From Hormiphora californensis (Eukaryota; Animalia; Ctenophora): a stretch of 64,000 nucleotides of DNA. Location of the stretch: the NCBI GenBank assembly GCA_020137815.1, contig CM035350.1, positions 2,046,001 to 2,110,000 of the forward strand, in the 5' to 3' direction. Position numbers and translations under genes: made by a program. Below the pieces are notes generated by a model, which ran no database searches, was not told where the DNA came from, and saw only the letters and a program-made list of their open reading frames with translations. Below, piece after piece: positions 11,601 to 58,772 of this stretch; positions within the stretch are counted from its first letter, which is position 1, and each line of letters opens with the position of its first letter.

Positions 11601-14600
11601 GCAAGTTGCGTCTAAAGGCACAGTTCTCAAGAGTCAGGTCGCTCAGAGAGGACACCAAGTCAGATATACCCAAGTGCTCGGCCATTGAGCTAACCTACCC
11701 CTCAGGGGACAGCTCTATCTCAAGGATCATATCTGGGTTCAAGAAGCACCAGTTCCAATGTTTCTTCACCCGGTTTGAGGACCTCCGGCACTGATGAAAT
11801 GGCATGAGGGTGATGACAAGATCGATCAGGGTACCTGGATGTCAGATCTGATCTCCACCCAACCCTTCCTAGCTCAGGAACACCAACTTTATCTTCTCTC
11901 TGAAGTGTCTGGAATCCCTGGGGTACCAGTTCCTTGACAAACTCTTCAAGACATCTCCTAACCACAAGAAGAACTTCTTCCGCTTCCTGACCGAGAGGCT
12001 GGAGGAGATAAAGGAGGAGGGAGTAGAGAGAATCACTCAGACCATCTACAAGCTGGTCCAGGGCTTCGAGAAGGATCCCTACCTTGATCCGTGCAGTGTC
12101 TTTGAGATGTATAGTAACAAGGTGATTGTTCGAGAGTGCGACATTAAATCTCACTACCAGTACATCAAGAGAATTATTGTCACTCCCTCCCGGTTCATCT
12201 ATGTCCCTCCTGAGCCCATTGCCATCAACAGGATCCTCCGGGCTCACATTGACTTCGTCGATAACTTTGCGAGGGTTTGCTTTAGAGACGAGGATTTCTC
12301 GCAGTTCAACGTTCACTCTGATAAGGCCACTGAGAATGTCAAGGTAGTGATCAACGAGGGAATTACGATTGCGGAGGGGGTAACGTTCCGGTTTCTGGGT
12401 TGCAGTAACTCCCAACTCAGATCCCAGGGGCTGTGGTTGTTCTACCCGCAGTGCCCCCACAGCATTGAATCCATTAGGGACAAGATTGGGGATCTGTCCA
12501 CCATGAAAACCATCCAGAAGTATGTGACCCGGATGGGCCTGGCGTTTACCGCTACCGACTTTTCCCTGACTGACAAGGTTGAGGTAGAGGAGATACCTGA
12601 GAAAGAGATTGTAGTGGGGAAGAGGAGGTACATTTTTAGTGACGGAGTGGGGTGCATCTCCCCAGCGGTACAAGATCTCATCATCAGGGAGAAATACGGC
12701 TCGGAGGTGGGCGAGGCGAGACCAGTTGCATTCCAGATCAGGATGGGAGGGTGCAAGGGCATGGTGGCGGTGAACCCGGAGCTGGGGGACCGGTTGGTGG
12801 TTCAGATCAGGCCCAGTATGAAGAAGTTCTCCTCTAAGAACATGGTTTTAGAGCCGTGCGGGTACAGCGGTCCTAGAGAGCTTCACATGAACAGACAGGT
12901 GATTGCCATCCTTCGAGCTCAGGGTGTCCCAGATCAGAGCTTCATCCTTCTGCAGAACAGGAGTCTCATAGAGCTTGCTGAAATGTTAACTAACGAGCGG
13001 CTGGCCAGGACCGAGTTGGGGTCCATGTTGGGTATGAAGGTGGCCGATCTAAAGGAATGTGGGTTGAAGGTGACCACGGAACCATTCCTCCGGAGAAAGC
13101 TGGTCTCCCTATACAAGTTCAAGATCAGAGATGCCATCACCAAGACCCGGTTCCGTATTGACCACAGGTATGGCCGACAGATGAAAGGGATAATGGACGA
13201 GACAGGGACCCTCCAATATGGGGAGGTGTTTGTCCAGTACAGCGACCTAACGGACCCCACCATGGAGAGAAGACTAACCCTCCAGGGTGATGTGTTTGTC
13301 ACTAAGAACCCCTGTCTGCACCCTGGGGACCTCCAGAGAGTTATAGCACGGGATGTCCCGGAACTACGTCACCTTTATGACGTCATAGTGTTCCCCGGAC
13401 AGGGTAAGAGACCCCATCCCAATGAGCTATCTGGATCTGATCTGGACGGTGATGAGTACTTTGTGTGCTGGGAGCCCAAGTTGATGCCCACTATTTCCTG
13501 TGAGCCTGCTGAGTATTACATTGAGGAGATAGCAGAGGAGAATGGAGAGGCACCCCCGCCCCCACCAGAGATGACAGAGGAAAGGATCAACAAGTTCGTG
13601 TTCGATTACATCACCAAGGGATCCAAGCTGGGCCAGATCAGCAACGCCCATGCTATATGGGCAGATAAAATGAAAGAGGGAGTGAGGTCAGAGAGATGTA
13701 TTGGGCTGGCGAAGAAGCACAGTGATGCAGTTGACTTTATAAAAACTGGTATTGCTCCAAAGTTTGACTTTAATGAACGTAGCCTGGACTACCCTGATTG
13801 GATGCTGAAACCGGACAAGACGGCCTATCACTAGCAAGACCTGCTATTGGTCAGATGTTCCACTGTTGTAGAGGGTCTAGATCATCACATCCTGCACAGG
13901 AAGGTGGGTGATGAGAGGATAAGACCGAGTCCTCTGTTCACCCTCTACCAGCCCCCTACTGTGGAGGAGCTGGCCAGCGCTACCCGATACTACACTGAGT
14001 ACTGCACAGATCTAGCTAACATAATGTCTGCCTATGGAATAGAGGAGGAGGGAGATATAGCTGCGGGATACCTCAACTCCATCAAGATGAGTCTGGCGAA
14101 GGAGCACGAGAGGAACTATGACATGAGGGAACAGTGTTTGGCGATGTTCCGAGCTCTCCAGAAGAAGACAAGACGGGCATTCTTCCACCACGCCGGGATT
14201 TCCAACCTGTGCTGGAGAGAGAAGGAGGACAAGGTATTGAGACAGGCAGCAGCGTGGTACTGGGTGGCTTATAATGACCCCCCTCTTCACCAGGGATACA
14301 GTCTCCTCTCATTCCCGTGGTGTGTCACTGAGGTACTGATAGCCATTCCAGAGGTGATGGGAACCAAGAGGGAGGACAACTGTGTGGCGGCCGTGCTACA
14401 AGATAACGTGATTGAGTGGTACCAGTCCGCCCTGAGACAGGGTGAGCTTCTAGAGGACACCCTCAGGGACACAATTAATGAGGTCCTACACCACAGCAAG
14501 GGAAAGATCAGGGATGCCAGTAGGGGGAAGTATGGGCTCATTCCTTCCAGGAACATTCTCCTGTTCACAGAGGAGAAGGAGAAGTGTTTTGAGTGGGTGA

Positions 14601-17600
14601 AGAGGAACGAAACTAACAACTGGATAGTAAAACTGGCTAATGAGACCAAGGACCCCTCTCCTCTCATCACTGTCTCAGCAGACCACGGGTTGAGGATTTA
14701 CCTGAGTAGAGATCCACTCACCTGGACCAAAGTGGAGCTACTCAAGCAGTATAATAACAAGTATAGCAGTGTCGGGCATGCTCTGTACATGGCCATTAGT
14801 TGGGCGGGGAGAGCGGGTCTGGTGACTCCGGACAAGGAACCTGATATAGGGGTTAGTCTGGTGGAGCACATGATACAGCAGGGTCACATCAACCTGCTCC
14901 ATGAGGGAGAACAACTAGAGGAGGAGGACACCATCCCCACTGGAAAGAGACCAAGGAGGTCGACTGCTAGCTACTACATTGGGTATCTCAAGTGGGTGAT
15001 AAGGGGTCTACCCTCCGAGGAGGGGAGGACACTGGGTGAGGAGGTGCTGGCCGGGGCCAGGAAGGTTCTTAGCACGGGGAAGAGTTTGAAGTCGGCTATG
15101 AGAGAGTTACATTGCATCTCCTACACTCTCTCCTTTGATACCAGTGATACATTCCAAGCTCTGAGTCTCAGGAGAAAGAGTGAGAAGAAAAAGTGTTACA
15201 CTATCGCCAAGGCAACATCCTTCTGTAACACGTACTTTAGGGAGCCCAGCGTTGCTAAGGTGGTTGCTAAGGGCGGGAGACCAGTTGACATCAAGATAAG
15301 AGAGGCGGAGTTGGGTGGTATGAGCGCCTTGATCCTTGAAATGTGGGGTGATAACCCCCAACAGATGAATGAAGCGGCTGACTACCTACAGATTGATGAT
15401 GGGAAGTTTGAACTAAAGGGCCACTTCCTCCACATTTCCCACCCCGGCTACCACCAGCTGTGTTACATTGCACCCAGACCCGATAGATCAAAGTGTGTGG
15501 AACAGTATACCTGTGTGAGGAAGCTGGACGAGGAATCAAAGAAAGATGCCACCGTCATCCACTACATAGAACCTATCTACTACGAGCGGCACAATGACAT
15601 TAGGGGTGTGGTGGGGAGAGAGGTGGAGAGCAGAGTGAAGGCCATGCGAGATGTCCCTCTCTACAATCCTATATCACATGGCGATCTGACTCTCCGGGCC
15701 CAATTTGGCAAGCTTTGTATTCGCAAAACGGAGGGGCACCAATTTGAGAAGAAGTACATGGGAGGTTTCAAAGATTCAAAGGACCGTGATTTGATCATGA
15801 AACACTTCCTGCAGAGCGGCAAGAAGGGCAGGTCTGTAGACACTTGGACGGTGTTCGTTGTGTTTGAGGGACTGAGGTACAAGATGGTGTTCAATGAAGA
15901 CCAGAAACTCCAGAGAGTCTCGCTGGAGGAGATTCTCTGGACGGATGTGATGTTGCATAGGACAGAGGGGAGTGATCTGAACATCACCCTGACATCAACT
16001 CACACCCTAGCAATGGACAGACTCCGACACCTACCTCTCACCCACGCTACCTACACAGGGAAGGTTGGGAAGTGGTTCACAAAGACACCTGATGGGAAGC
16101 TGAGGGTGGCAGAGGAGGGGGTCCCATGCTTTATCAGCCGTGTCGAGGTGGCCTAGAGAGAGTGTTCACCAGGTCAGCAAACAGACTAGAGACTTCCCCT
16201 TCACGCTGCACGAGAGACATATGGATGTGTACATGAGGAAGGGGGCAGGCGGAATAGAGCTGGAAAAGCTCAAATCCTACACTGAAGTCTCCCTGGAAGG
16301 AACTTTATCTAGTCTGGAGAATGCAGATAAGATTGTGCAAGAACTTCGTGCAAATGTCAACCGATCTGGCAGTTAACCCCAGACAACCACCGGGCAGATC
16401 TAGGAAGTCGAGTGGTAGGGGCCGAGGGGCTGTTATAACAGCAGGGCCTAGTAATATCGGGTATACTGGGGTGGGCAGCATGGCCCTACCTCCTCTTCAC
16501 ATGCCGACCAGTCTAGAAGATGGACTTTACATGCAGGGTCTCAGGGCGGCAGTTGCAGTACCGACCATCTACCAACCAGCACCACCCGCAGTCTACCAAC
16601 CAGCACCACCCACAGTCTACCAACCAGTGCAGCAGCAACAAGAGGGGGAGGAACCTGATGTGGAGATAGTTGAGGTCCTCTCTACCACCTCTCTAACCGG
16701 GGGAGTTGATGTGATTCAGGAACAGCAGCCCACACAGCAAATACAGCCACTTTGGGCGAGGACCGACTTGATGGGATCCGCTATAGAAGAGGGAGAGGTA
16801 TTGTGGTAGAAAGACTGGGAGTGATTATTGTTTGTGTTTTTTGTTATCTTGTTAATTTGAAAAAGCAGCAATGCAACATATGTTATGTTATGAAGGGCAT
16901 GTAACTTTTTTTCTGTGAAAATGATATGTCATATTGTTTTACATATATTTTATTGTTTTGTTATGGTAAAAAAGTTGTCTTGATCAATGTCTCGAAATGA
17001 AGATTGAAGCCTACCCTGCCTCGACAGTACAACCAGTACAATGTACACTTAGTACAACTAGCACAACTAGAACAACTGGACATATGTTACTTACTGATCA
17101 AACATTGCAAATACTTCTGAGGTTGGCTGGTGGATGGTACACAGGATGGTTCTGTTAGCTTTAGCCAACTTCCCTATCAGTCTTACAATGCTCTGTGCCA
17201 TAAAGGAATCCAGACCTGGGGGAGGGGTAATGACTTGGTAACTGGGGCACTATGTCTCTGTCTCTGTCTCTGTCTCTGTCTCTGTCTCTGTCTCTGTCTC
17301 TGTCTCTGCCTCTGTCTCTGTCTCTGTCTCTGCCTCTGTCTCTGTCTCTGTCTCTGCCTCTGTCTCTGTCTCTGTCTCTGTCTCTGTCTCTGTCTCTGTC
17401 TCTGTCTCCCTCTCTCTGATCTCTCTCTGTCTCTTACCGCTCGTGGGTTCATCAATGAAGAGTAGAGGTGGGTTCATGAGAAGTTCACATGCCACGGACA
17501 GCCTCTTTCTCTCTCCTCCCGATATGCCCCTAATCAGGCCGGCAGGTGCACCACACAGTGTGTTCTCCACCTTCGTTAGACCCAACTGAAGGGATATGTA

Positions 17601-21442: not shown

Positions 21443-23270
21443 TAATAATAATAATCAATACATTTAATATACCGCTTAATAGTGTTAAAAATAAATGGTT
21501 CACTACCGGGGTAAACGGATAAACGTTATACCATTTACCACTTTCTAAAGCGGTAGTTGCCTACCCAAAAGAAGAATGTTGTAGAACAGACTCCCCTCAG
21601 ATAGGAACTATATGCCAGTAGATAAGTGTGTGCATTGGCCATTGAGTTTAAAAAATATTTAATAAGAGAATAATTAATTAATTAATTTCATATGAGTAAA
21701 TACTGTTAATTAATAGTTTAATCAAGATAAAATCAGAGTTATATTGTACAGGTGATCAGATTAATTTAAAATAAGTCAGATAAGATTTACAGTTGGTATA
21801 AAAATAAATTATAAAAATAAACTATGTTGTGTATAAAAAAAACAGCCCGTAAAAAACTAGAAAAGGTAAAAAAAAATTACGTCAGGATAAAGTAAATTAC
21901 TGAAGATGCTAACAGATGGGTGAGTGAAGTGAACGATGGAGACTAATATATACTGTGCTATCTAATTGTAGACTTTATCGAAAAGGTGGGTCTTTAATCG
22001 CTTTTTAAACACTTCAGTAGAATCTGACTCTCGGATATCTCTAGGGAGGCTATTCCATAGTTTAGGAGCACAAATGCTAAATGCCTTAGTGGTGGATGAA
22101 TACTTATGCCTGTGTGATATCTGAAGAAGTGTAGAGTCACTGTTGGCTCGAAGGGTCTTTGTCTTAGGCGTTCGAAGAGGAATGAGGTCACTGATGTAGC
22201 CTGGAGCGAGGTCATTGATGCCTTTATAGGCCATGAGGCAAATCTTGAAGTGAATTCTGGATTTTATAGGCAAGAAGTGAAGATCTTTTCTCATCTGGGT
22301 TACTCCTCTGTGCTTCCGAGTTCCATAGATAAATCTCACAGCGCTGTTCTGGATCTTCTGCAGCCTGGAGATGTCTCGCTCAGTTATACCAAACAATAGA
22401 GCATTCCCGTAATCTAAACGAGAGTGAATCAAGGTGTGAACCAGCTTAATCTTCAGCTTTTTAGGTAACTTCTTAGCTATTCTCCAAAGGTTCAGTAACT
22501 GGATGTTACAGGCCTGAACTACCTTTGAGATATGGCTCGACATCGAGAGAAGTGGATCAAAATAAATTCCGAGGTTTCTTGCTGAGAAAGTGCACTTGAT
22601 TCCCGTTTCAGTCGTGGTAGCTACAGGATCCTCATTAGGCTCGAGTATAATTGAAACAGGATTTGTTGATTTATCTGCCTTGTTGTTCAGAATGAGTACC
22701 TCCGTTTTTCCGGCGTTCAGCTTGAGGTAGTTCAATCTCATCCACAACTTGATGTCCTTTATGCAGTTCTGGAGTGTGGCAACGACTGTATTGAAACTGT
22801 TAGGTGTGAAGCTCGTATATATTTGAGTATCATCGGCAAAGAGATGAATATTGAGCCCGTGCTTTTCAGCGATCTTCTGTAGTTCTCTCGTATACATGAT
22901 GAAGAGGATGGGGCCAAGTATACTTCCCTGAGGCACTCCTATTTCTACATCGATAGACTCTGACCTGCAGTTTCCAATCTGAACCGAAGTAGACCTACCT
23001 CGTAGATATGAGCCGAACCAAGCTAGTACACTGCCTCTGATTCTGTACTGACTCTCGAGCTTGCGAAGCAGTGCAGCATGTGAGACCGTGTCGAACGCAG
23101 CGCTGAGGTCGAGTAGGAGCAAGATGACTTTGGACTTCTTGTCGAGAAGTAGGGCGACATCATTCAGAATCTTGATGGTGGCGGTTTCGCAGCTGTGAAA
23201 CTTCCGATAGGCGGATTGGACTCCAGACAAGAGTTTGTTCTTCTCCAGGTACTCAGTCAGTTGAATTTGA
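21443..23270 (-). mobile_element. 5'-truncated L2/CR1-group LINE (RT ORF 21962-23230)
   Basis: SAYRKFHSCETA, LLDLSAAFDTV, GVPQGSILGP, LFADDTQ, SRLDYGN, FKKRLKTHLF. L2-like 3' end AAGCGGTATATTAAATG...(ATT)n at about 21443-21478. Confidence 0.9.
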
Positions 23271-24353: not shown

Positions 24354-33060
<8,707 letters not shown>

Positions 33061-34363
33061 ATCACAGTTGATTATCAGCCCTTTTTAACAATCACTAGGT
33101 AATGAACAAGTTGTTTCTCTACTGTACTGTAATACTGTAATACTGTAATACTGTACTACTGCTGATATAGTTTCGTTATCAGAAACACTGCAAACAATAC
33201 AAAATATAGTTACATGGACTACTAGTAACCTGGACTACTAGTAACACTAGTAACACCATTATTGTTACCTTTTAGAAACTGTTTCATGCTACAACGCACG
33301 GCTCTTGTTCTACGTTTTATTTTCTCTCGTTTTTGCTACATATAATGTCTACCGTGTTTTAAATAGTAGTGATATGACTGCGTTATATATTTTCTAGCTA
33401 CAGCGACAGTATAAGATAAACCCCCCCCCTGTTGTATTGGATCTGTATTCTTCCGCTGCTTCATATATCAGAGTATCTCATGAGCAAGCAAATTCTGGCC
33501 CGTGTGTGTGTGTGTGTGTGTCAGTGCGAGTGTGTGTGAGAGTTTGTTTGTGTGTGTGTGCGTGTGCGTGTGTGTGCGTGTGTGTGCGTGTTGTTTTGGA
33601 AGTTAGGAAGCCTGTGATTCTATACAGAAAGATATTATTACTGTGTAGTTGTATCTGGAAATTTTGATGCCAGTTTTCAGTCTACCGAAATCCAGCGTTT
33701 AAATTTGCCCTCTTCATCTCAGCGAATTCAATCGAGTTGATAACTGGCGAGGGCGAGTTTTTATCAAATATACTGCAATTAGAACGCCGCGCTTTCAAAC
33801 TTAATGCGCGCTAAAACATGAATTTAAAAAACATAACAAAATTTCTTGTTGTTTTTGCTCCGAACTTTTTTGAACTTTTTAAAAGCGGAGGTCGGGTACT
33901 GTGACCTCTGTGGAGCCTGCCGCTGATGACCCCAGGCACTTCTTAGCATGCTATAAGCGACATATTAGGCACTGTATTATTTTGATTTGTAATAGCACCA
34001 AACCAGCTTATTTTATGCTCTAAATCGCTGATCGCGTCCCGCCGCTTGCAAAAATCGAGATCGTAGCCTCAGAGTACTCAGTACTGACTGATGACTCACA
34101 ATTTACAGCCATTTCTTCATATTGATGATCTCTCAGGACTAAGAGACAAAATTAATGGCAGAGCAGCAGCAGGTCTTGCGGGAGGTTTTAATTATTCTTT
34201 TTTGTCACATTTGATTTTGCCTACCGGGTTTGGCGAGAGTGCAGACCTCATCCAGCCTCCAGCAATTCGTCGGCCGTCCAATGACTTCATTAATAAGTAT
34301 GTGATGAAGTGTCCCAACTTTTTACAATCTAAAATTTTAACTTTCTACTAAGGGGACAGTACC

Positions 34364-37300
34364 ATGACAAAAAAGAAGTTCGTAGAGGCTCCGTCTGGGA
34401 AATGGGTAAGCCTATTTGTTTCAAAACTGATTTATAAAAAGTTGGGTCGCTTCTGATCATTGCATTTATTTTGTTTTTCTTTTTTTACTTAATTGACTTA
34501 ATCAATAATCTTGTATTTTTTAAACATCATAAATTCATAGCTTTATGTCAGATCGCCGAAGTAAAGTAAGAACTCAGGAGAACCCCAAGCAGAGATCATC
34601 TAAATCAAACGAAAACCGACCACCCAAGTCATCCTCTAAACCCGATAAAGATAGTCGGACTAGAGATGAGAAACGACGAATAAAAGATGAACCAGTAAAC
34701 GGGAGCAGCAAATCTTCCAAAACATCTTCAAGGGACAATATCAAGAGTGAAACTAAAACTCGAGGAAGCGATGAAGAGAAAAGGAGGGAGAGAAAGAGCA
34801 GGGTAAAAGACTCTGAAAGGGAACGTAGTAAAGATTCTCAGCGGAAGGGAGTCGGGAGATCGCGAAAAACGGAGGGAATCCAGTCACAAAGAAAGGGATA
34901 GAGACAAGGAGGTAGATCGCAAACGAGACAAAGATAGTGATCGCAAACGAGACAAAGACAGTGATCGCCGGAGAGACAAAGACAAGGATAAAGACTAGGG
35001 AAAGGCACCGTCGAAAGGAAACGGAAGATGAGAGAAGGGAGCGAAAAGAGCGTGAGAGAGCAGAAAGGACGGCTTCAAAAGGAGAAGGAAGCAACAAGAG
35101 GTGGTGAAACCCCCAAAACCACCCACTCCTCCTCCTCCCCCTCCACCTGAACCGGAGGAAGCAGAGGAAGCAGAGGATGAGTACGACTACGAAGATGAGG
35201 AGTTTGAAGATTATGATGATGATTTTGAGAGTGATCCTGGTGATGAAGATGAAGATGAAGAAGATGAATCAGAGTTCGATAGTGATCTTGGTTCTGAGAG
35301 CACGGCTACCCCAGAAGTCGCTGCCTATCAGTGATACCCAGAAATTGAAGATCAGGGAAGCCATGGCGTTGGAAAATTCTCGTGTTGAGTCCTCTACTCC
35401 TCCCATCAACCTTCCTTCCTCTCCTACAAACACTCCCATGCCTTCGTCTCCTGTGGCTGACGCTAAAAGATTCTCGCAAAAACATCAGAGTACTGGATTT
35501 CGCCGCTGCCCAAAAGTCCCAAGCGAAGGACAAAGCTCTCTCCAAAACGGCACAACGAGGTCGGGATCTCATGCGGCTCATTGAACTCGACTCGGTTTTC
35601 TTTGATCTCATCGAGCTGAAGCCACAGACAGAATACGAGCTCTACATGAAGTCGTTTGGTCGAACTGAGACCCAGCAGAAACACACCCAGTACAACGAGG
35701 ACGCTGTTGATAGGGAGATGATGACAGAGGAACCGGATGTTAGGAGTTGCTGGAGTCAGCATCCTGCTGATACTGCCGTGGTTTCTGCTCACGAGGGAGA
35801 TGTAGACCCTGATCAGGAACCCTCCGAATCATATGATCCTGCCTCTCTGGATAGGTTCATTGCTCTCTCAGCCAAGATTGTCACCACTCTACTAGAGGAG
35901 AGGGCATCTAGTCATGGTTATGTTCATACCTTCAAACCAGTCAACACATCCAAGTTTAGTGATACCTCAGCGGAGTTCCCTGCTAATCCCATCACAGCCC
36001 ATCGTGCCCCCATCTACTGTACTCCTGTTACCGCCCAGACCTTCCTTGTGTGCTACACTCGCCCTAAATCAGACACCTCACCCCTTCCCACCCACGGTCT
36101 CAGTTGCACGTGGACTCTTCAGGATATTTACCAGCCTACTGGGATCCTATCCAGCAACTCTGCTCACAGGACAGCCTGTGTCAGTCCGTACAACCCGACC
36201 CTCATATTTGTGGGGTGTGAGGATGGTTCTATATCTGTGTGGGACCTAAACGAACCGGGAAACCTTCACTCTTCAGTCCAGGTGAACAACCTAGGATACA
36301 CGGTCCGATCCCCGACCTACAACACATCATCTGTCCAAGTGGCAGAGGCCCACCACTCTAAAATAACCCATATGGACGCTGTGAGGTTGGATCAAGAACT
36401 CCAGGTCGCTGCCTCCTTCCAGATCGCCTCCCTTGACGAGTCTGGTATTCTCATTGTATGGGTGGTCATTTCAGTGACAGACGCGTCTCTCTCCGGGTCC
36501 CAGATTGACCTTGGACTTCGGCCTGGTGGAAAGGTAAAACTGGTGAAAAGTGCACTGATAAATGTAAACTTCCCCCAGAATCCTGCAATAGATCTCTTCC
36601 CAGAGGTCCGGACATTCGCATTCAGACAAAGTTACTCAGATACCAGTCTGTATTTCGTGACAACCGACCAGGGTACTGTCTTGAAGGTATCCAGAAACCC
36701 CTCCATTGGACAACCAACCACATACGCCCCTGAATACTCCACTCCTACAATTGTGGGCTCCATGGATTTCAACAAGTTTAACTGGAAATATTTCCTAGCC
36801 GGGACAGCGGACGGGACGGTGTGTTTGTTCTATGTAGATAGACCCACCCCCCTCCTTGTCCTGGACAGGTTTACAAAGGGACGGCCAGTACGGACTGTCA
36901 AGTGGTCACGGTCCAGCTCCACACTGTTTTATGTAATGGACTCTGCAAACACGTTCTATTTGTGGGATCTCAGCGAGCGGGATTCGTCGCCTCTTGTGGT
37001 TGAAACTTACTCTAAAGGACTCCTATCATTCACAGAAATGCTGCCCTCAGCAGGACCCCCTGTTGTGGTTTTTACCTTCAAAGATGGCACAATGGAGGGT
37101 CACCATGTTAAGAAATCAGCTATAAGGGATGACGTGAACAATGTTAGTAAACTGGAGGGATATCTAGCGACGGTGTTGTAGCAGTGAGTTCAGAGACAAT
37201 CGAGAGGGAGGGTTCTATTTGTTTGGCTGGTCCAAAAGTGTTGTCGTGCAGGACCTTACTGTGTAAGGAGCTGTGAATGTGTTGTAGTGTTTGAATTGTG

Positions 37301-40300
37301 TGTTGGTAGTTTTCGAGCTGTTTAGAAAAATTGGCTGTTTGAATTTTCTCTCCCACACCCATTATAATACCAGACCATGTTTCACCTGTATACTTCATCC
37401 CCAATCTCTCAGTCTCTCACTGCTCCATCCCCAATCTCTCACTGCAGCCTCTACCTCTTGTAGGATGATCGGGGCCGGGGAACTGGTGGCAGAGCTGAGA
37501 GAACAGCTCACGGAAGAGTTCACCAAACTTGGTACAACGCCCTCCCAGTTTTGCCATGAAAACTATCAGGTCTACAAGGCAGCCCTGGGCAGGATCACAG
37601 AACATAGCACCGTCTACAAGCCCATCCTTACCGCTATCTCAAATACCTTCCACTCTGAAATAACCACTCTCCAAGAAACAGAGACCCGGGGTAAATTCCG
37701 AGAATCCTACGAGACAGAGCTGGAATTAGCGGACGAGACGATGATTAACCTGAGGAAGAGGGAGGAACAGCTGAAAGAAACTGTAGCCCAACTCCAATCA
37801 GAGAGAGTCACTCTAACGGAGTCCATTGTCAGCTTAAAGGAGCTGGTTGCAGATATCAGTGCACAGAGTCTGATGGTGGAGGAAGATGTGTTCCAAAACA
37901 AAGTTCTGGATGGCTTCACTTTGGAACAGATGACTAACGTGAACCTGCTCAGTAGGGAGGTAATGAAGTTGGAGACGAGGCATAGAGACATGCTGGAAAC
38001 CCAGGGGTCGGTGTTTGTACCGCGGGAGAAGTTTGAGGAAACACGGAGACTGTTGTTGAAGAAGGAGGAGGTGAAGGAGAGTAGGACTGATCAAATGCAG
38101 CAACTCTATAAACATGTTCCTGTTTTAAAACACATGTTAGAGGGTCTACAGCATGGTGACCATGCCCCCACTTCATTTGCTGAGATCGAGCAGTTAGCCA
38201 GGGAAGCTGTTGAGAATGTCAATGGAAGTGGACCTCTCTATGTTGAGGTGTATGATGATGAAGACCCAGCGAAGGAGAAAGAAGCAGAGCAAAAGTTAGC
38301 CTATATTGAGCAGTTAGATGAGTTCCTGAGGGAGGAGGATTATAAAACAGCTGCTATACACGCTGCTAGCTCCCCCGGTGGATTTCTCAGAACCATGACA
38401 ACACTTGAAGAGTTCAGAGCGGTTAGTAATGGAGATGAAACAGTCACCCCCTCACCCCTCTTCACATACTGTGCAACCCTAATGGCCACTGTACCCCAAC
38501 ACGAACCAGCACCCGAGGACCAGAGTTATGAGTGTGTGGCCGTGGCGCTCGGTGAGGGCAGGATGGATAATATCGCTCAGTGGATTGCTAACAAGTACCT
38601 TACTCTCTCCAGAAGAACGGCTGACTTGTTGCTGTGTAGTTGTCAGTGTAGGGGGAGGTGTGATTGTGAGAGTGGGACGCTGGCCATTGCTGTTTATCGA
38701 GATATTGCAGATCACACCATGACAGTCCACTCTCTGGCACGACAGGGTGCTCTCTACAGGGCCATACACTTTGCTAAGACCCATGAGTTGGGGGATCCCG
38801 CTCTCATGGCTCTACTGGGCCAGTTACCTTCGGTGGATCTGGCGGCTCTGTTGATTTTAGAAGAAGGATTCCATATTGGGGAAGTGTTGGAGTGTCTGTT
38901 GGTGAACCATAATGACAGTGTTTTTATTGGCCTCCTCAAACTACTAGATGACAATAACGATTTAAGGGAGGTTCTTGTGGCTGATGGCTCTCACGAGGGA
39001 GTCCAGTGGTCAGATTTTATTGAACTATGCCTCAGTTTGGGAGAGGATGGAATTGCAGAGGAGATACAAGCATTTTCAATTTCCCACGAAGCTATTGCTT
39101 CTGCAGCAGCATCTTTAGATCAGCCCGATGAAAATATTGAAGAATGAAAGATTGTACATGTTTTGTAGAAAATCTTCACACGCAGCTCTTACACACAACT
39201 GATCGTGTCTATTGTGTGTGTACTCAGTCATAGCTCGGAGGAGGTGGTCATAGCAACGGGCAGCCCGTTTTTCAACTTATAAAGTGTGTACTTTTTCAGC
39301 AGTCAGTATAACAGAGGCGCGCACACTGACGCCGCGCACCATCGTCTCCTCAAGGTGATTTTCTTCTGTCATGTGTGACTGTGTGTCACACTGTCATGTG
39401 ACTGTGTGCTGCATTTAAACTCAGCTGGTGTGTGCTTTATAGCTGATTTCTATAGACCTGTATTACTTTGGGGTGTCTTGAACTCTCTGCTATGTCACAG
39501 GATTCTATGCTGTTCTTTCTCAGGGCAGTCCGTGAACTCTGTGAAGTGTGCTCTCGGCTCTATGTTTGCTAACGTAGCAGAGCAGCTAACCAACTAATAT
39601 GATAACATGACCCTCTATTTCAGTTTACTTCTGATGGCTGGCCTCCAAAAGGACCCATAATACCTGGACCTAGTACTGCTGCACCTGCGACTACAATCCC
39701 TCAACCACCACCATGTTTTGTTAGGAATTTTGAAGAGAAAAAGAATGGATTCTCTAAACTCGTGAGTGTAAATTATCAATACTCAAGTGTTATGAAAATA
39801 AAGTGTGATCTAATGTTCGAGCCTTGAGAATATCCTACTATTTGTCTAATGTTGAGTAACCCTCATCACAGGACAACAAGTATACGTTGCGGGGTTGTGG
39901 GGAGGCACTGGGGAGGAAGGATCTGAGCCTAAGAAGGAAGGAAACGGGAGAGACCCTTCATCAAAGTGATGATATTATAGCTTGGGGTGACAACCGCCGA
40001 GGTGAGGGAAGAGGTTGTGATTTAGTAATCTATTTATTTCGTCTACTACAAGTTCATTTACTTCATTAGCTTTGATCATCTGGTCCTAATTACCATTTTC
40101 CCTTCCCTTTCAGACCAGAAGATATCTCGGACACACTCCACCTACACCTCCCCCTCTCCCAACCAACCCGGCTGAACACAGGAGGTTTGGTAGGCGGCCC
40201 AATCCTGCCAACCCAGTCTACCAACTCAGTACCACTACAGCGTGTTGGTTTGGTAATGACTCCCAGTCAACCCCTTACAAAGTCCTAGCGGAGACTCAGC

Positions 40301-40371
40301 ACCGCCATAACAGGCCAAATACCTGGAAGTACAGTACACATGCTCCCTACACCCTGGCAGACCTAGCTTGA
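34364..40371 (+). CDS. TEX36: TEX36-like (HDNR-family) protein; host gene
   Basis: Exon 1 34364-34405 (MTKKKFVEAPSGKW|gtaag) joins in phase 0 to exon 2 39624-39761 (FTSDGW...NGFSKL), exon 3 39872-40001 (DNKYTLRGCGEALGRKD...HQSDDIIAW) and exon 4 40114-40371 (HRRFGR...TPYKVLAETQ...NTWKYS; one +1 indel near 40150). Matches recalled TEX36 motifs MTKGRRF..DGRWF, FSxHDNR, LGRKK, RRFPR. Confidence 0.65.
34545..37181 (+). CDS. DYNC2I1: WDR60 / dynein-2 intermediate chain 1 (intronless; about 6 single-base insertions at 34840-35470)
   Basis: Charged R/K/D/E N-terminus, acidic YEDEEFEDYDDDFESD, RGRDLMRLIELD...EYELYMKSFG...QYNED...WSQHP, then WD40 repeats (GCEDGSISVWDL, DLGLRPGGKVKL, YLWDL). Confidence 0.88.
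37465..39147 (+). CDS. CLHC1: Clathrin heavy chain linker domain-containing protein 1-like (intronless)
   Basis: TSNAXIP1_N-like start (YKAALGRITEHSTVYKPILTAI), coiled coil, clathrin-linker motif YKTAAIHAASSPGGFLRT...SPLFTYC...ECVAVAL..GRMDNIAQWI. ATG directly after the acceptor TTGTAG|G. Confidence 0.78.
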   Translation: MIGAGELVAELREQLTEEFTKLGTTPSQFCHENYQVYKAALGRITEHSTVYKPILTAISNTFHSEITTLQETETRGKFRESYETELELADETMINLRKREEQLKETVAQLQSERVTLTESIVSLKELVADISAQSLMVEEDVFQNKVLDGFTLEQMTNVNLLSREVMKLETRHRDMLETQGSVFVPREKFEETRRLLLKKEEVKESRTDQMQQLYKHVPVLKHMLEGLQHGDHAPTSFAEIEQLAREAVENVNGSGPLYVEVYDDEDPAKEKEAEQKLAYIEQLDEFLREEDYKTAAIHAASSPGGFLRTMTTLEEFRAVSNGDETVTPSPLFTYCATLMATVPQHEPAPEDQSYECVAVALGEGRMDNIAQWIANKYLTLSRRTADLLLCSCQCRGRCDCESGTLAIAVYRDIADHTMTVHSLARQGALYRAIHFAKTHELGDPALMALLGQLPSVDLAALLILEEGFHIGEVLECLLVNHNDSVFIGLLKLLDDNNDLREVLVADGSHEGVQWSDFIELCLSLGEDGIAEEIQAFSISHEAIASAAASLDQPDENIEE

Positions 40372-40430: not shown

Positions 40431-40499
40431 GTGTGTTACCATGGTTACTGTGTGTTACCATGGTTACTGTGTGTTACCATGGTTACTGTGTGTTACCAT
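40431..40499. repeat. 19-bp tandem repeat GTGTGTTACCATGGTTACT (about 3.5 copies)
   Basis: Seen directly, 60 bp after the TEX36-like stop. Confidence 0.9.
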
Positions 40500-41427
40500 T
40501 TGTTTAGAACTTCCCTTATCTTAAATCGTGTTTTGACCTCTTGACCAGCTACCACCCCTGTTATTATGCCTGAATATACGCCTTTGCTTATGTGTCACGA
40601 TCAGTTTGTATGTTTATTGTATAAAGTGTGTATGTAAGATATTTTACTCCTTATCAACCCGTAAAAACGAAATCAATTTAAAGATTTACGAGCCGGACGT
40701 TCTCATACTACATATATGAAATTCTGGTTCTGGATTTGAAACTCAAGTCAACAAGTTGAAGTCGAACTCGAACTAGAGTCAGAGACTCAAATGTTGAGTC
40801 TCTGAGTTCAACTTCATGACTTGAGACCGACCTATGAGGCTCTAGTAAAACAATTTTTGACCTTGTCCACTATCTGAAATGTGCCTGCGTGCCGCTGTTG
40901 GTGTGATACCTGACAGACAGGCATACATCGTGGGCGTGATATTGTCGAACTAGGTGTACATGACTACATGGTGCCATGATATCTCTCAGGGTGTGTGAGT
41001 CACACAGCTATATATTATAATCCCGGGAAAGAATGAAAACGTCCGACTCCGAACAAACAAGAATAATATTATTTTGTTCAATATCATATGGCTGGTTCAC
41101 TGCAGGAAGATAATCTGGTATATCCCATGGATCTGTCAGGCCAATGCTCAGGCTACATGACAGTTCACTGTTCACAGCCATGGATCCTACTGGATGTTTT
41201 AGAAAGACTAACCTGGACCAACGCAACTTAAAAGGTTGGTATTACAGCCTGTATGTATGCTTTTTGTCGCATTGGTATCAATGATAGTCGGGAGAGTCGC
41301 GAAGTGAAACTGAAGATGTGGAAATGATACTATCACTTCCATCTGTTCACTTCGCGACTTCGATCTCACAGGCACACATGACACATGTGCCTATATCGAT
41401 CACTATGTCACCAATATGTCGCGGTAA

Positions 41428-52262: not shown

Positions 52263-58772
<6,510 letters not shown>

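Follow-up and report, generated by a model that had tools for sequence, protein, structure and literature searches.

The window analysed here is a 64-kb stretch of the genome of the ctenophore Hormiphora californensis (C1:2,046,001-2,110,000), and all positions below are counted from its first base. On its forward strand lie, in this order, a 14-codon mini-exon (34364-34405), the genes WDR60 (34545-37181) and CLHC1 (37465-39147), and the exons of a TEX36-like gene of the HDNR family (39624-40371). The end of the mini-exon is 139 nt from the WDR60 ATG, while 283 nt separate WDR60 from CLHC1 and 476 nt separate CLHC1 from the TEX36-like exons. An earlier reading of this DNA (the original prediction) had named the three genes, given the first two of these distances, and placed WDR60 and CLHC1 as intronless guests within the first intron of the TEX36-like gene, one promoter serving three ciliary mRNAs. 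The gene identities hold, that of the TEX36-like gene by way of its ctenophore orthologues, and both distances were measured as given. The locus is a cluster of three cilia genes on one strand that is old and shared across the ctenophores. Its sequence organization makes it an evenly balanced proposition that the cluster is expressed as one transcription unit resolved by a trans-spliced leader (SL), possibly inside an intron.

WDR60 (DYNC2I1) is the intermediate chain of dynein-2 and has a documented role in cilia. In the window the gene has no introns, and its part from 35382 to 37181 is an open reading frame (ORF) of 599 codons. This ORF matches the human WDR60 chain 6rlb_C with E=2.6e-73 over residues 468-1047, the second-best structure match being IC138 (E=1.9e-10), and its C-terminal WD40 propeller is closer to WDR60 than to other dynein intermediate chains. 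Sequence matches include named DYNC2I1 proteins from many animals, and identity to the ctenophore orthologues over the 599 codons is 58-60%. The start codon at 34545 opens the peptide MSDRRSK, in agreement with the MDRRxR beginnings of the orthologues, and a single copy of the gene exists in the genome (110.69 Mb in 45 contigs searched).

The spacer that follows (37182-37464) holds a GT-rich stretch, a pyrimidine tract and a tgtAG acceptor 1 nt before the CLHC1 ATG; neither an RFX X-box nor AATAAA was found in its 283 nt. CLHC1, likewise single-copy, is an intact intronless ORF of 560 codons, in the size range of about 550-600 amino acids, and carries the domain pair TSNAXIP1_N and Clathrin_H_link (E=5.7e-07 and 1.8e-10, both above the Pfam cut-off). 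It is 55-57% identical to ctenophore CLHC1, its best named relative comes from Mnemiopsis leidyi, and its start codon agrees with the orthologous N-termini. The claim of two intronless ORFs thus stands for CLHC1 but not for WDR60, which is not one open ORF as assembled. Similarly, the claimed association of all three genes with cilia or sperm is documented for WDR60 and TEX36, but a literature search yielded no good tie between CLHC1 and cilia.

The TEX36-like gene, a single locus in the genome, is represented by three exons on the forward strand. Exon 2 (39624-39761) is preceded by the acceptor ctctatttcAG and lacks an ATG in its own frame; the ATG at 39634 belongs to the +1 frame, where it reads MAGLQKDP before a stop. 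Exon 3 (39872-40001) encodes DNKYTLRGCGEALGRK...WGDNRR and ends in the donor CGAG/GTGAGG. In exon 4 (40114-40371) the front part, QKISRTHSTYTSPSPNQP, and the back part, RFGRR...YTLADLA with its stop codon, lie in different frames with one break between them. Searches with the spliced model were made one exon at a time: exons 2-4 gave no match to Pfam HDNR (PF15115), and a search of the same genome with this family likewise gave none. The family assignment comes instead from four ctenophore orthologues (P0074, P0077, P0078 and P0079), to which the exons align at 42-58% identity, the 85-residue reading of exon 4 alone matching P0074 with E=1.7e-15. Three of these, P0077, P0078 and P0079, score 28.5-31.7 bits against the HDNR cut-off of 27, and P0074 reaches 24.2 bits. 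The proposed profile check of the family thus yields no match on the single exons and scores at or near the cut-off for the orthologues. All of them match the profile only from position 53 on, positions 1-52 being the vertebrate-type N-terminus. PDB searches for TEX36 with the profile and with P0079 returned nothing meaningful, and an Atlas search with exon 3 gave no usable match. TEX36 has been described as an Mn-repeat microtubule inner protein in the doublets of sea-urchin sperm (PMC10973386).

As assembled, WDR60 lacks an uninterrupted coding sequence from its conserved start, with five frame changes between 34840 and 35460. Within 34545-35480 the conserved protein has to be read in frames 0, 1, 2, 1, 2 and 0 in turn, with stops in every frame; the switches lie at about 34840 (0 to 1), 34990 (1 to 2), 35090 (2 to 1), 35310 (1 to 2) and 35455 (2 to 0). 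Together with the break in TEX36-like exon 4, located between about 40165 and 40180, six breaks are documented within 6 kb, all six near short homopolymers and five of the extra-base type. Such a stretch, intronless and riddled with stops, mimics a pseudogene, and one could read WDR60 as a decaying processed retrocopy whose breaks are real mutations, in which case the locus would not be a working unit. We consider this highly improbable. There is no second WDR60 in the genome; the 599-codon C-terminal part is open and conserved; the frame-shifted pieces are as conserved as the open parts, with 56-65% identity in the KIREAMALENSRV block; and other ctenophores also have WDR60 as one full-length protein, on contigs of genomic size among others. 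Further, the WDR60 breaks crowd into 0.7 kb, against none in 3.4 kb of adjacent coding sequence that has 41 homopolymer runs of at least 4, and the neighbouring conserved TEX36-like gene carries a break too. Because the shifted pieces are conserved, this WDR60 is the sole copy and the neighbouring gene is also broken, the breaks are most likely assembly indels. Three other accounts were tried and rejected. Tiny introns at the frame changes lack plausible GT..AG pairs, the conserved peptide continuing directly in the next frame. Homopolymer density does not explain the clustering, there being 17 runs with five breaks against the 41 runs with none. A retrocopy with an intron-bearing parent elsewhere is ruled out by the single locus of each gene.

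The order WDR60, CLHC1, TEX36-like is kept across ctenophores, an observation that is new here and answers the conservation check of the original prediction in the affirmative. In Mnemiopsis the three genes are the consecutive models ACHWQZ_G006896, G006897 and G006898 on one contig of 21.5 Mb, and a single Bolinopsis chromosome carries both CLHC1 and the TEX36-like gene. In three further sequence clusters, homologues of WDR60 and CLHC1 come from contigs of equal size six times: 8,578 bp in one cluster, 9,557 and 326,560 bp in another, and 12,580, 15,954 and 368,968 bp in the third. Given these equal sizes, the two genes almost certainly share those contigs. WDR60 and CLHC1 are each recorded in other ctenophores as a single full-length protein, also on genomic-size contigs, which suggests that both are intronless throughout the phylum.

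H. californensis is a trans-splicing organism, its 44-nt SL being present on at least 56% of Iso-Seq reads (PMC8527503, Schultz et al. 2021). The 3' part of the SL has 626 near-exact copies in the genome against 0 for a reversed control, all of them outside the window, where no SL gene was found; an Rfam search over 32-42 kb of the window was also without a match. The cluster has the layout expected of an SL-resolved operon, with all genes on one strand, spacers of 283 and 476 nt, and an AG 4, 1 and 10 nt before the respective ATGs. The first two of these distances, for WDR60 and CLHC1, bear out the earlier remark that an AG stands beside each ATG. An SL on a downstream mRNA is seen for the TEX36-like gene of another ctenophore: L007, a metatranscriptome contig from a Bolinopsis-like species that encodes P0074, opens with CAAATAATTTGAG, which is the conserved 3' terminus of the ctenophore SL; 29 nt further on comes the ATG. 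Hence, in the species of L007, the TEX36-like gene forms a trans-spliced unit whose start lies in the proximal exon, the counterpart of exon 2. Upstream of the acceptor, DNA similarity between the window and L007 was not significant (p=0.25). L007 also carries, at 23-46, a 7-codon upstream ORF (uORF) with a strong ATG context, the TGA of which overlaps the main ATG (ATGA) in a layout typical of termination-reinitiation. A similar 8-codon uORF in exon 2 of the window ends with the TAA at 39658-39660.

On this arrangement we propose that transcription would start upstream of 34352, at what would be a single promoter, and pass through all three genes to give a polycistronic RNA. The 3' splice sites 1-11 nt before the starts (at 34353, 34541, 37465 and 39624) would receive the 44-nt SL, that on the WDR60 and CLHC1 mRNAs being a prediction of the model, and 3'-end cleavage after each gene would leave monocistronic capped mRNAs. 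Instead or in addition, the Hormiphora TEX36-like mRNA might be formed by a cis-splice that carries the exon at 34364 over WDR60 and CLHC1 to 39624, which would make these two intronless genes guests of the first TEX36-like intron; the 34405-39624 junction is thus another predicted product. We regard co-transcription of the three genes, judged from their arrangement, as a claim with about as much for it as against it. Against it stand the statement of a 2021 methods paper that no operons are on record for ctenophores (PMC7986045), and the consideration that shared enhancers rather than a shared RNA could have conserved the linkage.

The nesting of WDR60 and CLHC1 turns on the mini-exon MTKKKFVEAPSGKW, which has an ATG and a GTAAGC donor and is a candidate first coding exon of the TEX36-like gene. 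As was claimed for it, it joins exon 2 in frame: the 34405-39624 join is of phase 0/0, stays open through exons 2 and 3, and implies an intron of 5,218 nt. A further acceptor-like element, ctactaAG at 34345-34352 on the forward strand, ends 11 nt 5' of the mini-exon ATG and reads as a possible SL acceptor. Between the mini-exon and WDR60 lies an intron-like stretch of 135 nt (34406-34540, forward strand) running from GTAAGC through a pyrimidine tract to tcatAG. The mini-exon is not a coding exon of WDR60, because the MSDRRSK at 34545 matches the orthologous starts, and a splice to the WDR60 acceptor at 34541 is indeed out of frame, as had been stated. The same strand also has an 86-codon ATG-initiated ORF (34091-34351) that stops 12 nt before the mini-exon ATG and has no family match.

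As assembled, only the exon at 34364 provides TEX36-like exon 2 with an in-frame ATG. Nesting is further supported by its good donor and by a putative resemblance of the mini-exon product and the start of exon 2 to the N-terminus of vertebrate TEX36. In the published annotation of this genome, moreover, 1,654 hosts contain between them 2,357 nested intronic genes, many of which are parallel to the host (PMC8527503). Several observations weigh against such nesting. The acceptor closest to the 34405 donor is that of WDR60, whose position 135 nt away is a problem for a 5.2-kb splice from the same donor, and a 34405-34541 splice would place an out-of-frame uORF on the WDR60 mRNA. No MTKKKF start is present among the four orthologues, which begin with MAHGQ, MVNGQ, MATVVSQ and MSMMSAILS inside the proximal exon; the orthologous mRNA L007 bears its SL in that exon; and the Mnemiopsis annotation has three separate genes. 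Separately, the 30-residue read-through of the mini-exon has no Pfam match, HDNR included, and a literature search for the human TEX36 N-terminal string found none. Of the original prediction, then, the gene identities and the use of an SL in this genome stand, and the conserved order that it had listed as a check is borne out, but its nesting lacks support from the orthologous N-termini, the SL-bearing mRNA and the Mnemiopsis gene models. On the sequence evidence we hold the nesting of WDR60 and CLHC1 to be evenly poised.

A plain tandem trio, in which the TEX36-like gene starts in its proximal exon and each gene may have its own promoter, is a tangible possibility that falls short of probable. 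In such a trio the ATG at 39634 would be the true start, a base having been lost from the CCC run at about 39653, the site at 39624 would be an acceptor for the SL or for the 5' untranslated region, and the mini-exon would either lead WDR60 transcripts as an untranslated or upstream exon, belong to some other gene or have arisen by chance. It accords with the orthologous starts and with the SL found 29 nt before one of them. MAGLQKDP resembles the orthologous N-termini MAHGQS and MSAILSHDP, and one added C would fuse the 39634 ORF to the conserved frame, in a region with six frame breaks within 6 kb, one of these in the TEX36-like gene itself. An acceptor about 10 nt before the ATG repeats the layout of WDR60 and CLHC1, an X-box lies upstream at 39244, and the Mnemiopsis numbering puts the TEX36-like gene after CLHC1. 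However, a tandem trio requires another, unobserved, error within a window of about 25 nt, and offers no account of the mini-exon, which is well formed, has an ATG and a strong donor and is in frame with 39624, or of its putative likeness to vertebrate TEX36. The short N-terminal matches are weak, moreover, with a competing HDP match in another frame, and the upstream DNA comparison with L007 gives the same non-significant result noted above. Arrangements other than nested or tandem appear quite improbable.

A different explanation for the conserved linkage is shared cis-regulation, with RFX X-boxes driving separate promoters of the three genes from the site at 39244, a threefold array at 40435-40486 and weak matches around 33209-33254. 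In other animals RFX factors are well-established regulators of cilia genes, and the window has an excess of X-box-like motifs (19, where 3.9 are expected). The site at 39244-39257 (GTGGTCATAGCAAC, forward strand, 1 mismatch) is in the CLHC1/TEX36-like spacer, 21 nt before TATAAAG. The latter belongs to TATAAAGTGTGTA (39278-39290, forward strand), 131 nt past the CLHC1 stop, which could act as a TATA box or, together with a GU-rich element, as a UAUAAA poly(A) signal; a donor-like AAG/GTGATT follows 3' of it at 39354/39355. Given this X-box and the possible TATA box, the TEX36-like gene may have its own promoter, a point that also counts against a single promoter for the cluster. The array at 40435-40486, assigned to neither strand, is made up of a perfect X-box, GTAACCATGGTAAC, occurring three times in tandem with a 19-bp period. 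It lies on the 3' border of the cluster, 64-115 nt past the TEX36-like stop, and is likely to be a regulatory element of the cluster or of the next gene; a few other loci have similar arrays. That the array at 40435-40486 may belong to the gene downstream speaks against shared cis-regulation, as does the lack of any X-box in the 139-nt and 283-nt spacers, which leaves WDR60 and CLHC1 looking promoter-poor on their sequence. RFX binding in ctenophores is only predicted, and such regulation would in any case be compatible with an operon. As the cause of the linkage we rate it somewhat unlikely.

The motif TATAAAGTGTGTA recurs at 40620-40632, 249 nt past the TEX36-like stop, and both copies have one or more X-boxes upstream; as a genome-wide motif it was rejected, being no more frequent than its control (11 against 12). 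Arrays of the perfect X-box palindrome GTTACCATGGTAAC, with a 19-bp period and differing spacers, are found at a handful of loci elsewhere (G000 C3:8375072, C6:8006855, C7:6224768, C12:4753386 and C13:4623274-4630642), and such tandem arrays may constitute a regulatory module of ctenophore cilia genes. Within the window, four X-box-like motifs, one of them perfect, lie within 100 bp at 25719-25816, where the nearby ORFs have no Pfam match; Pfam searches of the neighbouring ORFs at 40-54 kb and 24-27 kb gave nothing informative. More distant neighbours include a cellular-type RNA-dependent RNA polymerase at 12107-16156 (Pfam RdRP, E=3e-146), laid out as two long ORFs in the same frame a few codons apart and then a long extension without a Pfam match. 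Two retroelement reverse-transcriptase ORFs (RVT_1) are at 21962-23230 on the reverse strand and at 28472-30752 on the forward strand, the latter ending about 3.6 kb upstream of the mini-exon. An intronless 402-codon UNC-93/MFS ORF lies at 54625-55833, and long single-exon genes seem common in the window.

The candidate unit invites comparison with the SL operons of nematodes, tunicates (Ciona, Oikopleura), flatworms and chaetognaths, with which it shares the single strand, the short spacers and the acceptor before each ATG. In those animals a polycistronic RNA is resolved into monocistronic mature mRNAs; here such an RNA is a candidate proposed from sequence. Unlike those operons, the Hormiphora unit may sit inside a coding intron, and no specialised SL2-type leader is known here. 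The human genes DYNC2I1, CLHC1 and TEX36 have many exons and are on different chromosomes. They are orthologous to the three genes of the cluster (through 6rlb_C, the CLHC1 domain pair and the HDNR family, respectively), but in ctenophores, unlike in human, WDR60 and CLHC1 are intronless and all three genes are adjacent. Parallel nested genes and the use of an SL are already published for this same Hormiphora genome, and the locus would be one such case; operons are not, the word having 0 occurrences in that paper, the text of which is also without this locus, its ciliary content or its ctenophore-wide conservation (PMC8527503).

A more far-reaching scenario, which we find unlikely, is that intronless, retrogene-like copies of WDR60 and CLHC1 were inserted, in the sense direction, into the first intron of the axonemal gene TEX36 in the ctenophore ancestor, gaining the cilia-specific promoter of the host by way of the SL and forming a conserved operon within a coding intron, and that lobates subsequently lost exon 1, leaving a tandem operon. 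Were this so, the cluster would be the first type of operon for the phylum, and SL trans-splicing would offer a general route for the domestication of retrocopies.

Most ctenophore mRNAs are trans-spliced, yet operons have gone unreported in the phylum, and the present locus is a concrete test case. It is also functionally coherent, combining a subunit of the intraflagellar transport dynein, an axonemal inner protein and CLHC1. If the three genes are not co-transcribed, the locus would still usefully illustrate deep microsynteny among cilia genes and the way in which assembly errors can pass for pseudogenes. If they are, the known range of SL-resolved polycistrons would come to include one of the earliest-branching animal phyla, the abundance of parallel nested genes in this genome would be explained, and there would be a mechanism by which intronless gene copies gain tissue-specific expression.

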